Source: Phaeosaccion multiseriatum (lineage: Eukaryota; Protista; Ochrophyta, other classes). Taken from it: a stretch of 64,000 nucleotides of DNA. The position numbers and the translations under genes are program-made. The first letter of the stretch is position 1. The number at the start of each line of letters is the position of its first letter. The notes beneath the pieces were generated by a model that searched no databases, was not told the DNA's origin, and saw only the letters and a program-made list of their open reading frames with translations. Below are positions 135-12,200 of this stretch, in pieces. The DNA is taken from the NCBI GenBank assembly GCA_965112735.1, contig OZ218950.1, forward strand, positions 1,860,001 to 1,924,000, in the 5' to 3' direction.

Positions 135-1518
135 ATGCTAAGTGAGGGACACGTATCGAGCTCTTGGTCTCTGAAGGAGGAAGGGGAGGAAGGGGAGAGG
201 GAGGTGTGGCATCGCCAAGAGCCCCGCATGGTGAGCGAAGAGGAGGAGGAGGAGGAGGAGGAGGAGGAGGAGGAGGAGGAGGAGGAGGAGGAGGAGGAGG
301 AGGAGGAGGAGGAGGAGGAGGAGGAGGAGGAGGAGGAGGAGGAGGAGGAGGAGGAGGAGGAGGAGGAGGAGGAGGAGGAGGAGGAGGAGGAGGAGGAGGA
401 GGAGGAGGAGGAGGAGGAGGAGGAGGAGGAGGAGGGGGAAGAGGAGGCCGACCACCGCAGGAGAGAGGAGCAAGGAGGGGTGGGAGTAAAGACCGCTGGG
501 ACTGAGGTGACGCGTGAAGTGGGGAGGGGGCTCCTCCGAGGCTCGAGTTATCGATGGCATGAGGACAGGCAAAGATACGAAGAGAAGGAAGGATCAGGGG
601 AGGAAGACAACGCAAGTCGCAGCCAATGGAGGGCAGCAGTTGGTGGTACAGCAGCAGCAGGACCCACAAGTGTTGGAGCAAGAGTCGTCGGGCTGGACGG
701 GAGCAGTGATGTCAGCAGGCGGCTCTCTCGGAGGAGAACCGTCTTCCACCCCGGGGTCAGCGCCGACGGTTTCCACGCCGGGGTGGGGCCTCGGGCCGGC
801 ACAGACGCCTTCTCCTTCCTCCGAGATGAGAAAGCCAAGATGCGAGCGGCGTCTGCGGGGCCTGGGGTACAAAGAGGGGTGGCGGTTGGTGATACAGACA
901 GAGCCGGAGCAGGAGGAGCATTGCTGATGGCTTGTACCGGTGAAGAGCACGGCGTGGTGGAGGGGAGGAGCCTGAGGGCAGCAGCTGAGGATGGAGGGAG
1001 CAGAAGAAGAAGAGAAGAGGAGAGGGCGCTGGGGGGCATGGTGGAGCGGCATCGACAGGCATGCCTCCATCGCTTGGGACGGGCCCCGTTTGAGCACGTG
1101 CTAGACTTCATTCGCGACGCAGGAGTGACAGACACCCCCACCGGAGGAGGAGGAGGAGGAGACGCATCGCAGCAGGTAAATGTCTGTCCCGGGCTCCAAG
1201 AGGCAAGACCGATCCGATATCGAATGGTAGACTTTATGGGCCGGCAGAAGAACCCTTCCCCTGACTTAACGACTGCATCCCTCCCCCTTGTTGCAGGAGG
1301 CGCGCCTCGCGGAGCTGCAGAGCTACCTGGTGTCAGAGAGAGGTCTGACGCTGCTGCAAGCGTCTGAGAGCGTCTTCCTCGCGCAGAAACTCATCGCCTT
1401 CGAGCAGGCCCTGCAGGACTGTAGAGGAGGCCGTGGTGGGGGCAAGCAGCAGAAAGACATGGATGTCCAGCATCGTCACCGCCATTTGGAGTGCCACCAC
1501 AGCCCAGTAGTGCAGTGA
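135..1518 (+). pseudogene. Low-complexity ORF with a degenerate BTB/POZ (KCTD-like) remnant; probable gene fragment
   Basis: Around 1050-1118 the sequence reads IDRHASIAWDGP, then changes frame to FEHVLDFIRD, resembling the KCTD BTB motif FIDRDxxxFxxILxFLR. A plausible GT..AG intron (~1175-1297) leads to EARLAELQSYL. The N-terminal part is a (GAG)n poly-E run. Confidence 0.3.
238..435. repeat. (GAG)n microsatellite, ~65 units
   Basis: Directly visible. Confidence 0.95.
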
Positions 1519-1547
1519 TATAATATCATAATATCCAGTACGGTTCA

Positions 1548-1805
1548 TCGGCTCCAGGCGAGGTTTCTCGGGCCCGATAAAGCAGAAGCCTGCGGCGGCC
1601 TGCGGCCGAAAGTAAGAAGCCTGCGGCTGGCCTGCGGCCAGAAGCCTGCAGAAAGTAGCGAAAAGCCTGCCAAGTCCCCCATTTTTCTCCCAGCCTGCGA
1701 AGCCTGAAGCCTGACCATGGCCTGCGGCCAGAAGCCTGCGCTGGCCTGCGGCCAGAAGCCCGACGCCAGAAGCCTAAAGCCCGAGAAACCTCGCCTGCGA
1801 GCCGA
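1548..1805. mobile_element. MITE-like non-autonomous TIR element (~260 bp)
   Basis: TCGGCTCCAGGCGAGGTTTCTCGGGC (1548-1573) is the reverse complement of GCCCGAGAAACCTCGCCTGCGAGCCGA (1779-1805) apart from a 1-nt indel. The interior is packed with GAAGCCTGCG/GGCCTGCGGCC subterminal repeats. CGGTT occurs at 1541-1545 and 1806-1810 and may be a TSD; the exact ends are uncertain. Confidence 0.7.
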
Positions 1806-1924
1806 CGGTTGTTATAAACGGGCGGGCGATGGATTTGAAGTCGAGAGTGCCCTTTGGCGAGTGGTATGTCTATTTTTCAGAGCTTCCTACACTACTTTGA
1901 CAGGGGAGGTGTGGTACCGAAGCA

Positions 1925-2148
1925 GTCTCGGGACGAACAGCGTCACCTGAAATCGATCAAGCAGCCTTACCGCCCTTCCTGCTTTATACCCCCTGCAGCT
2001 CCAATGCACGTGATCGTACTTTCGCTAGACTGATGCCTCTACTGGCTAGGCATGAGTCAAGTACGACTTTAGCACGTGGGGATAGACCCCAAAGCTGCCC
2101 CCCTCCAGCTGGCTGGAGGTTGGCAGCGCTTGATGGAAGCATCGCTCG
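1925..2148 (-). ncRNA. Putative Fanzor omegaRNA: scaffold ~2148-1947 plus guide ~1946-1925
   Basis: Lies immediately 3' of the Fanzor stop codon. Helices visible: enclosing stem 2128-2134/1956-1962, hairpin 2094-2127 (GCTGCC..CCTCCAGC / GCTGGAGG..GGCAGC), and a 72-nt nested stem 2007-2078 (CACGTG, TCGTACTT/AAGTACGA, GACT..ATGCCT/AGGCAT..AGTC). The structure ends at GATCGATTTCAGG, an IS607-like right end. The boundaries are inferred. Confidence 0.7.
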
Positions 2149-3944
2149 TCACCTGGACCATGTCATTGTCAACCCTTGGTCCACGATGCTCTTGATGAAT
2201 ATGTTGCGGGCCCCATTCACGTCTCGCCCGCATCTAAAGTTGCAAAGGTGGCACCGGAACACCTTTGCACCACCCAGATTGTAGCGTACGGCGCCACACT
2301 CGGAGCACGTCTTGCTCGTGTACTCCTCTGTCACCATGACGACGTTGGTCCCCTTCTCGAGAGCCTTGGCTTTCAGCATCTCGCGAAATTTATAGTGGGA
2401 CCATGTCATCATGGCTCTGGCCGTCTTGCTGTTGATCCTGCGGAAGCCACGGGCCTGCTGCCTCCTCCGCACCATATCCTGGGTGTTGAACTTCGGCAGG
2501 AAGACAACATCGTACTCATCACACAAATACTTGCATGTCTTTCGGTGCACATCCTTCACGAGATTCTTGAGGCGCCGGATCGCACGATGCCACGCTCGAC
2601 GCCGCCGATAGCGGACCTTGGGCTTGACTGTATCATCGACGGATCGAGATTGTAGACGATCCAGGTGTGCACAAAGTCGATAGACGCGCCCCACATCGCC
2701 CGGGGCCACCTCCGTGACAACTCCGTGGTGATCGATGACGGTGTTGAATGTGCGCACACCTGGGTCCAGCGCACACAATCGAAGGTCGCTGGCATCTCCG
2801 TCAAAATCCTTCTTCAGAACCCTCTTCTCCGTAACCACCGCCCAGAAGTTGCCGCACCTGGAGGAAATGGAGATTTTGATGATATCGCAAGAAGGCAGGG
2901 CGGTTTCAGATGAGATTAGATGGTCCATAAGTCAATGGCCCAGGCCCAGGCAGATACGTTGATAGCTACACACCTGTCCTTCTGAAGAATGAGCTCTCCT
3001 CCCTCGAAGGCACTGAGGTCCTCACACGCACGAAGGGGCTCGCCGTTGGTGAAGGTGGTGAAGAGTTTAAGACCACATCCCCCGTCCTCGAGCTCCTCAG
3101 TCTTCCATGTTTTGCCTGGCACTCTCATGGTCTGCACGTCCTTCTTCCGTCTGAAGCGCAGCTCGTACTGGTGTTCGGGGTTTTTCCTGCGCTTGGCCTT
3201 GTTGCTCTCGTCGGCCTTGAGAAGATCCACCATCGCCGCGTCCCGGATTGCCGCAGGCGTCTCCAGCACCCACGCTGTTCTGCGCGGAGTTGGAGCAGCA
3301 TCCCGTCGGTCTGGCTTGTTCTTCCTCCCGCTACCCGGTCCCTTTCTCCTCTTGTTGTTGTTGACGCGCCGCGGCTTCACCCCTCCATGCACATGGAGCC
3401 CGACGACCTTGGCGCGAAAGTCCTTCGCACTCATTGCGCATTTGCCCTGCTTGTGCATAGAGAGGCACTTATTGTAGGTCCATCTTGAAGTCCCAAACCA
3501 TCCGTTCAGCCTCTTGGTCCAGGCCGGAGTCGGACGAAGCTGGATGCGCCTGGCACGATTCTCGGTCGCGATGTCCTCCTCTTCTTCCTCCACCCTCCTC
3601 CTCTTCTTCCTCCATCCTCTTCTCTTCTTCGCGTCTTGGATCACCCCGCCCATTCTCTCCGCCCAAGAAGCAGTCGCCTGTGGCCAGGAGAACCTTGGCC
3701 ACCCCGGCCCACGGGGCAAGGTTGGCACCACCTTGACCAGTCTCCACCATGCTTTTCGTGCGTGCACTCCGTCAGCAGGCCTTGAGGCGTTCTCGTCCGT
3801 CACGGTAGTCTGAGCCGGGTCGCGGAGACGGAAGAGCCACTCGCGCGCCACAGTGGAGCACCAGTGGTTCCAGAAGGGCCGGAACGGGGGACCTGCTGGA
3901 TCCCTTGGCTGGTTTACTCCGGAGAAGTCTACGCTCTCCTCCAT
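2149..3944 (-). CDS. Fanzor2 (IS607 TnpB-like RNA-guided endonuclease), ~559 aa, two exons (3944-2974, 2857-2149)
   Basis: Motifs present: HTH_OrfB-like RARRIQLRPT..WFGTSRWTYN, WVLETPAAIRDAAMVDLLKA, RuvC-I CALDPGVRTF (Fanzor D-P-G), relocated RuvC-II Glu in VTEEYTSKTC, Zn finger CSEC..CHLC, and RuvC-III RDVNGARNI. Removing the intron GTGTGT..TTTCCTCCAG (2973-2858) restores the frame and gives LILQKDRCGNFWAVV. Confidence 0.92.
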
Positions 3945-4080
3945 GGACACATGCCGTCTAAGGAAAAAAAATGAGTGGCGGAGCTTTGGGCTTGCTTTGA
4001 CGTGTTTCGAGCCCTTTTCCACAAGCGAGGATGGCACTATATGTGTTTCCTTCTTTCTCTCTTTTGGTACTGTAGTACCC

Positions 4081-4200
4081 TCGGCTCCAGGTTTCTCGGG
4101 CTTTAGGCTTCTGGGCCGTAGCTACCCCCCTCCAGGCTTCGGGCTTCTGGCCGCAGGCCAGTGGTCAGGCTTCAGGCTTCTCAGGCTGGCTGGGAGAAGA
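4081..4200. mobile_element. Second, diverged end of the same TIR family, inverted relative to 1680-1805
   Basis: TCGGCTCCAGGTTTCTCGGGCTTTAGGCTTCTGG..GGCTTCTGGCCGCAGGCCA..TGGTCAGGCTTCAGGCTTC..GCTGGGAGAA aligns with the reverse complement of 1680-1805. No partner TIR was found downstream. Confidence 0.7.
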
Positions 4201-4448
4201 AAAGAAAAAAAAATAGGGGGGGGGGGGGAACGCGCACACACACAGGCCCTACAAGGCAGCTTAAGCTGGGCAGATGACCTGACCCGCCTTGATGTAGCTT
4301 TTGGGCAGATGACCAGACCAACTTAAGGACTGTCTGAAGTATACTTATTTTTTTATTATTAATTAATAAAAAATTAATATTAAAAAACAACTGTCACCAC
4401 CATCTGCGCCAACTCGCTCCCGGGTGGGCAGGCCTTCAGCCGGCTTCA

Positions 4449-6420
<1,972 letters not shown>

Positions 6421-9205: not shown

Positions 9206-12200
9206 TTATGTGTTGTTAATCTCCTCCCACTCGTGCTTGGCTATCTTTGAATAGAACTTCCCTTGGTGCTTCTCCCTGTTGATGCGCCAGTAGTGCTCCG
9301 GCATTGGGGCAGACTTGGAGTGCGTCTTCAGCTTCTGACTCATTGTAGAGACGAACTCCTCGTCGTGAGTGATCACGACGAGCTGGAACTTGGCCGCCTG
9401 GCAGGCAGGGGGTGGAGGGATGGCAGTCAATTGATGGGGGGGGGGGTTGGGTGCGTGCGTGGGTGAGAGAGAGACGAGAGAGAGGCCCATAGAGAGAGAG
9501 AGAGAGAGAGAGGGGTCGAGTGGGTGGCCTGTATAGCCTAATTCCCTCGCCCCTACGCACCCACCCCCACACGTGTCACCACCATACCCACATCCGACTC
9601 CCCTCCACTGCCATCCCTTGCATGGTACTTCCACTGCCATCCCTGACAGGGTACCTACCTTCTGGGACCTATCGGCGATGATCTTGGCCAGCGCCTCGGC
9701 CAAGCCCTGCAGCAGCAGCAGCAGCAGCAAGGTTTATTGATTGTTAAATCCATCAGCACTGTCAATCACTCAATCACTCAATCACTCCATCAACACATCA
9801 ATCAGTCATGGGAGGAACGAAGCACTTGCAGCAGCAGCGGGAGAGGCAGCACCAGCAGCAAACACATTGTTTTGTTCCGTCCGGAGAGAGGGCGTGCCTT
9901 GTTCCGACCGGGAGGCGAAAGTCCCTCCCGTACACATGTCCTTCTCCACAGCAAGGAGGGCTGCGGAGAAGGACAAAACTTCTCTCCCTCCCTCCCCCCT
10001 CACTCTCTCCTCACATTCTTGTTGTCCTTGTCGAGGTTGGTGGTAGGCTCATCCAAGGCAAGTACGCTGCACTTGAGGCAGAACGTCTCTGCCAGGGCGA
10101 GGCGGATCACAATGCTCGCCAGCACCCTCTGCCCCGCCGAGCAGCGGCCCTTCATGTCCAAGTTGGCTGCAGACGGCCAGCCATTGGATGCCATCCATAA
10201 AGAGTGGGGAGGAGGAGGAGGAGGAGGAGGAGGAGGAGGAGAAGGAGGGGGGGGGGAGGAGGGAGAAGCCAGTGCGAGTTTGAGTTGGCAAAGGCGAGGA
10301 ATGAAGAACCCAACAGGTGCAATTGACATGGCATCATGACATAGCAATGCATGCGCCATTCACCTCTCCCTACACACTCATGCACTCACCTCCGTCCTTG
10401 GTCATTGCCACGCGGTAGTTGTAGGATCGCCTGGCCTTGGTGCTTCCCCCCTCCTCCCCCGACACGATCTCAATCTTGTCAATGTCCTGCCCCTTGTATG
10501 TCTCTCCCCACAGCTGGTGCACGGCCTTGTTGATGTCAGCGATCTTCATGGCGTGGTATTCCAACAGAGACTTGTGTGTACATGTGTGTGTATTACGGGG
10601 CGGGCAGTTGCAGGTGCAGATTGAGTTTGCAAGCTTCAGTCTCACATTCACACATTGAACGGATGACCGACCGACTTGACCAGGCTTCTCGCCCCTCCGA
10701 CGTAAAACCCTGTATGACACGTCCCCACCGCCTATCTTCAAACACACACACAAACTCACGCACGCACGCACGCACACACACACAGACACTAACGCACGCA
10801 CTACCTCACCCACATACCCGTACCCCCCCCCCCCCCCGTACCTTGTCCAGGGCAAGCCAGAACTTGTCGAGGTCTTTGACTGCCATCTCCGTACAGGAGA
10901 ACTCCTGTTGCTTCTGGCAGTGCTTGGCCTTGACATCTTGGTAGTCATCAGCCCTCAGACTCCTCTTTAGTTCCTTGTGCCTCTCATGCAGCGTCGAATA
11001 CTTCCCCCTCTGCTCGGCCTTGTCAGACTCGAGCGTACGCAAGCCCGCGTCCAGCGTGCTGATTTGGTCGTGCAGCGACCTTCCCCCAGCCCGCAGATGC
11101 TCCCCCTCCTTCTCTCGAATCTTCTCCTCCAGCGCCAATATCTCCCCCTGCATCGCCTCTCGCTCCTTCTCCATGGCAATGATGGTCAAGGCCTCCCTCG
11201 CATCCGACGCAAACTTGTCCTGCTCACTGCCATCGGCTTCCGCTTCGTCAAGCCGTGCCTGGGCCTCTAACCAGTGCTCGTTTGCCACTTTGCACCCCTC
11301 CTTGTTGCGCGCAATGTTTGCCTCATTCTCCTCCATTTGGCCCATCAGATCGCTCTCCTCTGACTTACTCAGCCTCTCCTGCAGGGACCTGGGGGGGTGG
11401 TGGGGGAGAGTGCGCGAGCGCCACGCCGACACACATACACACACGACAGAGAGAGAGAGAACAACGGCACCAAAACCCGGTCCCCCAAACACAAGGAAGA
11501 GTGAGGTGTGCTAACACAATGAGTTCCCGCCCTATCTGAGGGCCTCCTCCCTCCCCACCTGAAGGCATTTGCCCCCGCAGTTGTGTCGCTGAGTAAATCC
11601 TGCGCCTCGTCCTCGGCGGTACGGGCGTAGCGACGGAACTGCTCCAGCTCCTACTCATGTCAGTAGGCCGAGTGTATGGGCGGGGGTGGGGGGGCAACAA
11701 CAGGGAGGAGAGAGAGAGGGTGGAGAGAACAAGCACGAGTTAAGAAGAGGTGAGGGAGTGGGAGTGCTAGGAAAGCGAGAGAGATCAAGTAGACAAGCCA
11801 GTCGGATGATCGGCTTCTAGTGGGGGGGGGAGGGGAGGAAACCCCTTGAGAAGACACCTACAATCGAATACTCTTCCAAGCAGTCGTTTCCTTGCCGAGA
11901 GTACATCGACAAGACGCCCTCAAGCTCTCCACAATCAACGTGCCAACATGCCGAACATAGCTACGAATGGGAAAAGCAATTACGCACGCAAACCCCCTGT
12001 CTGTCTTGTGGCTTCTGGACAGCGCGCATACATGCAGCACACAGAGAACAGCCAGCAGCAACCCCTCTTTTTACCCTACCCACCTCTGACTTGCGGCCTA
12101 GCTCCTGCTTGAGAGGCAGCTCTCTCTCTTCCTGCTTGCGGATGTCCTCGCTCAGCTCCTGCCGCTGCATTCTGACCTCTGCCAGCCGCTTCCTCATCGT

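Follow-up and report, generated by a model that had tools for sequence, protein, structure and literature searches.

A Fanzor2 gene lacking TnpA and carrying a predicted, lineage-specific intron in the ochrophyte Phaeosaccion multiseriatum

Fanzors are eukaryotic RNA-guided nucleases and candidates for compact genome editors, of which thousands have been catalogued. Here we describe a Fanzor2 gene on the minus strand of a 64,000-nt stretch of the Phaeosaccion multiseriatum genome (assembly GCA_965112735.1, contig OZ218950.1, positions 1,860,001 to 1,924,000), which we refer to as the window and in whose own coordinates all its positions are given. Two out-of-frame open reading frames (ORFs) form a single gene once a 116-nt segment between them is removed, and the gene stands without the TnpA recombinase that accompanies most of its relatives. 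Taking the whole chain of argument together, we consider it reasonably probable that the gene is a Fanzor2 of the IS607/giant-virus lineage that has no TnpA and that recently acquired, by insertion, an intron which is probably spliced out.

Joining minus-strand positions 3944-2974 to 2857-2149 gives 1680 nt, comprising 559 codons and a TGA stop with no internal stop codon (Table 1); without the join, the exon 1 frame terminates at 2916 (minus strand). This two-ORF join had been proposed in a preliminary description of the window, and its coordinates and arithmetic are exact. Because an open product results from 54 of the GT..AG pairs of 30-400 nt that we enumerated across the intron zone, of which 2973/2858 is the shortest, a stop-free join alone is weak evidence. 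Among the enumerated pairs, however, only 2973/2858 leaves a product that is residue-for-residue colinear with homologues (ELILQKDR|CGNFWAV compared with EVVIQKDRCGNFYA). The closest relatives carry the same block unbroken as (V/I)IQKDRCGNFYA, and QKDRCGNF is contiguous in P0001, P0002, L003 and L004 and unbroken in every homologue examined. Exon 1 starts at the first ATG of its open frame, with similarity beginning at residue 4 for contigs L001/L002 and at residue 21 for L004. The preliminary description also held that the gene would be hidden from ORF-only mining, which overstates the case: the exon-2 ORF by itself matches TnpB models with E values from 1e-21 to 1e-29.

That the encoded protein belongs to the TnpB/Fanzor family we regard as very nearly certain. 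Searching the exon products separately, we found that exon 2 matches PF07282 (Cas12f1-like_TNB; E 3.9e-21, 75.4 bits, cut-off 26.3) and the NCBIfam model NF040570 (guided_TnpB; 101.1 bits, cut-off 100), with PF01385 (OrfB_IS605) falling slightly below its cut-off (30.4 bits, cut-off 30.5). The layout is colinear with TnpBs of 380-410 aa, save for an N-terminal extension and short insertions. Every catalytic landmark named in the preliminary description is present in the joined protein, namely DPG (D355), VTEEYTS (E501), RDVNGA (D536) and a C4 zinc finger. The sequence CALDPGVRTF around DPG is invariant across a 16-sequence alignment; the canonical RuvC-II Glu position is occupied by FLPKF (residues 443-447, in the context VVFLPKFNT) and that Glu is lost; and E501 is followed by EYTSKT and then C508, which puts the alternative Glu six residues ahead of the zinc finger. 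DPG combined with an alternative Glu six residues before the zinc finger is the published Fanzor fingerprint (PMC10711439), and the ApmFz2 catalytic residues D324 and E467 have been tested experimentally (PMC10530073). All 29 of the 29 columns conserved at ≥90% among 103 relatives are retained in the window protein (family median 0.97).

Table 1. Predicted and observed features of the Fanzor2 locus, in window coordinates.
Feature	Position	Strand	Basis or remark
MITE-like (miniature inverted-repeat transposable element-like) high-copy repeat with its own terminal inverted repeats	1548..1804	.	344 nt downstream of the stop codon
Putative omegaRNA scaffold region	1944..2200	-	Predicted extent; right end placed near AGGTG (1948-1944) by analogy to ...TAGGCG
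Conserved hairpin GCUUUGGGGUCUAUCCCC, first module of the clade 3' scaffold	2072..2099	-	nhmmer top hit in the window; in 8/8 related loci
Exon 2	2149..2857	-	709 nt, residues 324-559 plus TGA at 2151-2149; RuvC and zinc ribbon
RuvC-III Asp D536 of RDVNGARNI	2221..2223	-	Alignment
C4 zinc ribbon C508, C511, C526, C529 (CxxC...CxxC)	2242..2307	-	Sequence
Alternative RuvC-II Glu E501	2326..2328	-	ApmFz2 E467 equivalent by alignment
RuvC-I Asp D355 of DPG	2764..2766	-	ApmFz2 D324 equivalent by alignment
Direct repeat CAGGTG	2855..2860 (3' copy); 2971-2976 (5' copy)	-	3' copy spans the acceptor; spacing exactly 116 nt
Predicted exon-exon junction	2974/2857	-	Exon 1 end ...AAGGACAG; exon 2 start GTGCGGCAAC
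Predicted spliceosomal intron	2858..2973	-	116 nt, phase 2, 48% GC; GTGTGT...CTCCATTTCCTCCAG, polypyrimidine run then CAG
50-bp piece of a high-copy dispersed repeat inside the intron	2913..2962	.	Same-organism read contigs
Exon 1	2974..3944	-	971 nt, residues 1-323 plus 2 nt of codon 324; N-terminal extension, helix-turn-helix (HTH), part of REC/WED
K/R-rich insertion	3297..3377	-	Residues ~190-216; alignments
HTH_OrfB_IS605	3450..3560	-	Residues 129-165; PF12323 E 1e-6, 28.6 bits (cut-off 21)
Basic cluster KKRRGWRKKRRR, candidate nuclear localisation signal (NLS)	3594..3629	-	Residues 106-117; read from sequence, NLS role putative
Inverted partial copy of the MITE-like repeat	4065..4201	.	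~120 nt upstream of the ATG

Both sequence comparison and modelled fold support assignment to Fanzor2, to which the protein is nearer than to Fanzor1. Against solved structures, the top phmmer match is 9b0l chain P (mimivirus L79, ApmFz2; E 8.5e-21), while the Fanzor1 chain (8gkh, SpuFz1) gave no match at E up to 0.01 among those structures. A Foldseek search with an AlphaFold model of the RuvC half alone (pLDDT 74, pTM 0.70) likewise ranked 9b0l first (1.6e-10), with SpuFz1 (8gkh) at rank 33 and 14% identity. The DPG Asp, the alternative Glu, the RD Asp and the C4 ribbon of ApmFz2 (also called ApmFNuc) all align with those of the window protein at ~26% identity in the aligned RuvC half, and the two proteins have in common an N-terminal extension and a similar size (520 vs 559 aa). 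They differ in that the gene for ApmFz2 is free of introns and belongs to an IS607 element that includes TnpA (PMC10530073), whereas the window gene has a predicted intron and no TnpA, and in the RPFWN-type N-terminus and K/R-rich insertion of the window protein. With Fanzor1 (SpuFz1) it has the superfamily and the rearranged catalytic site in common, but is set apart by a compact TnpB-like layout with the HTH typical of Fanzor2.

The proteins nearest to it, found in marine metagenomes and in genome records of Pylaiella littoralis and Ectocarpus, are 54-58% identical in the RuvC half; the brown-alga genome copies, its nearest named relatives, stand at about 55%. Cyanobacterial TnpBs ('pro-Fanzors') follow at 47-50%. 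In a tree of 104 proteins, which took in no Fanzor1 sequence, the window protein falls in a 14-member clade with Pylaiella, Ectocarpus and L001 (Shimodaira-Hasegawa-like approximate likelihood ratio test, SH-aLRT, 100), with P0122 as sister. This clade is placed among copies from giant-virus metagenome-assembled genomes (MAGs), and the cyanobacterial group forms a separate clade (SH-aLRT 100) across a starred split (96) from the window's group. The earlier suggestion that the gene belongs to the IS607-derived Fanzor2 group is thus upheld by the ranking of 9b0l in sequence and fold, by the HTH_OrfB_IS605 domain and by a position in the tree among IS607-linked relatives. The cyanobacterial pro-Fanzors (for example P0034, P0039 and P0070, from Microcoleus and Coleofasciculus), which have been proposed as the prokaryotic source of Fanzor2 (PMC10711439), are IS607 TnpBs with the same RuvC fingerprint as the window protein, but are prokaryotic, only ~380-400 aa long, and without the N-terminal extension, the K/R insertion or the intron.

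Brown-alga and marine IS607 Fanzor2 proteins (L001/L002; L003, which is Pylaiella littoralis CAXMZX020000168.1; Ectocarpus spp.; and Logan contig L004) are 44-45% identical to the window protein over ~540-557 aa, the closest full-length relative with gene context being contig L001/L002 (44% over 557 residues). They have in common with it the N-terminal motifs, the K/R-rich insertion and the first hairpin of a 3' RNA described below; unlike the window gene, they have a serine recombinase directly upstream that overlaps the nuclease start, are unbroken at the intron site, and carry a ~240-nt 3' RNA ending in TAGGCG. The N-terminal extension is homologous by itself (E 4e-5 to L004) and has two motifs in common with L001/L002, RPFW[ND] and TD.N.S.P...ARK.W. 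In alignments, the K/R-rich insertion is common to the brown-alga/L001 clade and lacking from cyanobacterial and R104-like relatives. An FWN-type N-terminus had previously been counted as fitting the IS607-derived Fanzor2 group; among the sequences aligned, the motif is truly conserved, as RPFW[ND], but in this subclade only.

Of 84 related loci, 65 carry a serine recombinase (resolvase) gene immediately ahead of the nuclease, the Pylaiella locus included, and in L001 the nuclease gene directly follows and overlaps the serine recombinase gene, which is the IS607 layout. The nuclease frame of L001 (5358-7233), like that of L002, stays open for >400 nt upstream of its called start; this open stretch runs, in a different frame, across the 3'-terminal two-thirds of the serine recombinase gene, and the overlapped part is homologous to the N-terminal extension of the window protein. 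In the Pylaiella copy (L003, 5349-7192), the resolvase and the nuclease are each split over different frames; this copy is either decaying or has introns of its own, and the record's gene model cuts out 79 nt in the K-rich region.

A conserved non-coding sequence of ~240 nt follows the protein core in seven related loci (L001 7191-7437, L003 7204-7444, L004 2012-2250, L085 1823-2051, L087 1770-2005, L088 2029-2282 and L089 3274-3529), from which we built a covariance model (R1) and an nhmmer sequence profile. This RNA begins with the hairpin GGCWUUGGGGCCUACCCC (GGGGCCUACCCC) and ends in ...UAGGCG, immediately beyond which the loci diverge, as would be expected at a scaffold/guide junction. More than one canonical pair type is seen at 40 of its 69 predicted pairs and, with these covarying pairs and no matching Rfam entry, it is a ready candidate for an omegaRNA family. 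The first hairpin sits at the expected place in the window, where the covariance model hits 2108-2034 (-) with 7.9 bits (E 0.005 within 900 nt), and the region 1900-2260 (-) folds better than its shuffles (z = -4.0). By analogy, a further hairpin, followed by ...UUUCAGGUG near 1948-1944, may mark the corresponding scaffold end. An Rfam search of 1400-4400 gave no match.

Several observations weigh against a spliced and working gene, and they make a freshly inactivated pseudogene the main rival, although one that we judge unlikely: the insertion would be repeat-derived and never spliced, translation would end at 2916 after 342 residues, and the locus would be a dead remnant of IS607 type. The intron site is uninterrupted in every relative examined, so the 116 nt are a lineage-specific insertion found in no homologue. 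The 6-bp direct repeat at its borders resembles a target-site duplication (TSD) or repair microhomology, the pre-insertion sequence GAC AGG TGC would have provided CAGGTG, and such a duplication restores the frame after any insertion of this kind, so that an open product is no proof of splicing. Inside the insertion, the summed contig depth in the two bins over the 50-bp repeat fragment reaches tens to hundreds of times single-copy, with loose ends at 2913 and 2957/2962 and other copies diverging on both sides. The locus is covered by four sequencing runs from a single sample, and these look like genomic DNA, since the intron is present and depth is even over coding and non-coding parts; limiting the run search to RNA libraries turned up none. 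The left end is missing, and so is TnpA, for which a tblastn search of the 64-kb window with the L001 resolvase (E up to 50) gave a best E of 0.9. With no resolvase in 64 kb, the gene is a Fanzor2 by sequence but the element is incomplete. Most of the clade 3' RNA is likewise unrecognisable, as the nhmmer profile and the covariance model (242 positions) match only the first hairpin in the window. Three further points count against the favoured account: a search of a protein collection with exon 1, which would admit the 559-aa form, brought up nothing encoded by the gene; the 259-aa ORF, looked up by exact sequence, was absent from the protein collection as well; and a 7-codon upstream ORF read from the sequence (MCPWRRA, 3942-3965 (-)) overlaps the start codon, its ATG being out of frame and 7 nt 5' of the predicted start.

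Other features argue against a dead gene. There is no further lesion in the 1680 nt, the conserved columns are all kept, and the splice signals are good: the 5' splice site GTGTGT differs from GTGAGT at +4 alone, and the polypyrimidine tract is good and accompanied by a CAG acceptor. This GTGTGT..CAG combination fits local splice usage, as the three GT-AG introns of a RAD50/SMC-like gene at a distance of 5 kb begin with GTGAGT, GTGAGG and GTAGGT and all end in a CAG acceptor; these introns point to a eukaryotic nuclear setting. In addition, the frame expected to encode tnpA over 3530-3944 is unrecognisable while the overlapping N-terminal frame of the nuclease can still be recognised, which suggests selection on the nuclease frame. 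On the quality of the splice signals, the lack of other damage and the outlasting of the tnpA frame by the nuclease frame, the 116-nt segment is probably spliced; weighing these against the points above, we consider actual splicing and activity about evenly balanced. The claim in the preliminary description that the nuclease is possibly active is accordingly weakened, both by the absence of TnpA and by a clade 3' RNA that can be recognised no further than its first hairpin, and its label 'domesticating' is not borne out.

With a lineage-specific site, a 6-bp direct repeat and an internal repeat piece, the 116-nt segment looks like a recent repeat- or repair-derived insertion with a short duplication, which is a known route to new introns (PMC9860276). 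With the introners described there it has in common that it is confined to one lineage, that a short direct repeat provides AG|GT at either border, and that part of its sequence belongs to a repeat family. It differs from them in that the repeat-family match is a 50-bp internal piece only, in that no inverted ends were found within the intron, and in that its splicing is predicted. On the plus strand, other genomic copies of the 2913-2962 repeat run on into ...GATGTTGGAAGGCCTC at one end and GAACGGGTGGCGTGGCTCTCACTATCC at the opposite end.

High-copy dispersed repeats flank the Fanzor2 gene on both sides, and a second rival, which we hold to be very unlikely, takes them as the ends (1548-1804 and 4065-4201) of a cut-and-paste transposon that captured the nuclease, as in the Fanzor2* type, and that would be mobilised in trans by the transposase of that family. 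Capture by transposons with terminal inverted repeats (TIRs) is documented in Chloropicon and molluscs (PMC10711439), and the MITE-like repeat (TIR ~CGGCTC(C)CAGGCGAGGTTTCTCGGGC) has just two copies in 64 kb, which bracket the gene in inverted orientation. The left copy, however, is a complete element with inverted ends of its own; loose ends of other copies put the repeat termini facing the gene, which therefore lies outside each unit; the gene has single-copy depth, whereas the summed read-contig depth of the repeat is ~100-270x single copy; and no TSD was identified. Candidate excision joints at 1573/4103 and 1602/4152 were rejected as artefacts of the repeat's own inverted ends. Because the termini face the gene, the gene is single-copy in depth and the apparent skips between the two copies are explained by the symmetry of the repeat, we do not read these repeats as gene-carrying transposon ends. 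The Fanzor2* genes of Chloropicon primus and Mercenaria mercenaria (PMC10711439) resemble the window gene in encoding a Fanzor2-type protein in a eukaryotic genome with no IS607 TnpA, but lie inside defined TIR/TSD elements, while the repeats in the window have termini facing the gene and no demonstrated TSD or transposase link.

Finally, the gene might be intact merely through recent viral integration, as part of an endogenous giant-virus (phaeovirus-like) insertion, given that its relatives abound in giant-virus MAG contigs, that L001 is accompanied by Bro-N/T5orf172 and hybrid histidine-kinase genes, and that Fanzor elements are reported from giant viruses endogenous to algae, both brown and green; but this we think most improbable, as GC content overall (coding sequence 58.6%, window 58.5%, L001 50%) and at third codon positions matches the surrounding window and not L001, a Pfam search of ten large ORFs gave one ankyrin match and no virus-hallmark domain, an intron-bearing RAD50/SMC-like host gene lies 5 kb off, and the gene itself contains an intron-like insertion and is bordered to left and right by high-copy repeats of the host.

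In the favoured account, then, a TnpA-less Fanzor2 gene of the IS607/giant-virus lineage would be resident in a eukaryotic nuclear genome, with its single lineage-specific 116-nt insertion most likely functioning as a spliceosomal intron of recent gain. Translation after splicing would give a protein of 559 aa. Its N-terminal extension, peculiar to the clade, would bring the RPFWN motif and the basic cluster; then would come an HTH and the K/R-rich insertion, ahead of a RuvC domain whose D-E-D triad is rearranged in the Fanzor manner and the C4 zinc ribbon. By homology to ApmFz2, the RNA partner of this protein would be transcribed from the 3' end of the same locus, and the protein would cut guide-matched double-stranded DNA beside a short adjacent motif. 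A more ambitious version, tentative and in our view rather unlikely as a whole, is that the copy is a giant-virus/IS607 Fanzor2 in the course of adapting to a nuclear genome, having lost tnpA, matching the window in overall composition, carrying basic NLS-like clusters and having newly gained a functional intron when repeat-derived DNA inserted with an AGGT-containing duplication, and that it is still active with a remodelled, shorter guide RNA.

The reads also bear on copy number within the genome. Exon 2 shows unitig fragmentation and 1.2-2.5x depth, and at 2389-2393 there are read contigs with T>C, T>C and T>A at ~2x single-copy depth; the variant contig encodes conservative Y>F and K>R changes, for both of which homologues show either state. 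The genome probably contains one or more close paralogues of the RuvC half at other sites, unless the sample differs from the assembly; a close paralogue carrying the Y>F/K>R variant would indicate recent copying. As for the wider neighbourhood, the window at 9206-10420 (-) holds the terminal exons of the RAD50/SMC-type ABC ATPase gene (signature motif, Walker B, VITHDEEF), whose introns are ~220-310 nt long and have a high content of CT and simple repeats; an atlas search with one exon of this gene gave weak SMC_N-type matches only. At 135-600 and 5930-6080 there are long, perfect simple repeats of coding-like character, comprising a (GAG/GAA)n stretch of ~70 Glu codons and a 12-nt unit that reads as (GRQA)n.

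Fanzors with introns or an acquired NLS are already known from the literature (PMC10530073), as are TnpA-less copies (PMC10711439), and sharing of Fanzors from virus to host is likewise published, so that another Fanzor2 is in itself an incremental addition. What the window brings into view is a coherent subclade of brown-alga genome copies and marine IS607 elements that we did not find singled out in the publications we consulted, marked by a motif at the N-terminus, by the K/R-rich insertion and by a 3' RNA that is well conserved and ends in TAGGCG, and the 3' RNA of this clade provides a ready-made guide-RNA model for the family. If the segment is spliced, its single intron would represent a datable insertion-type gain in a gene of prokaryotic or viral origin, and the gene would offer a simple test case for the adaptation of prokaryotic and viral genes to eukaryotic genomes.

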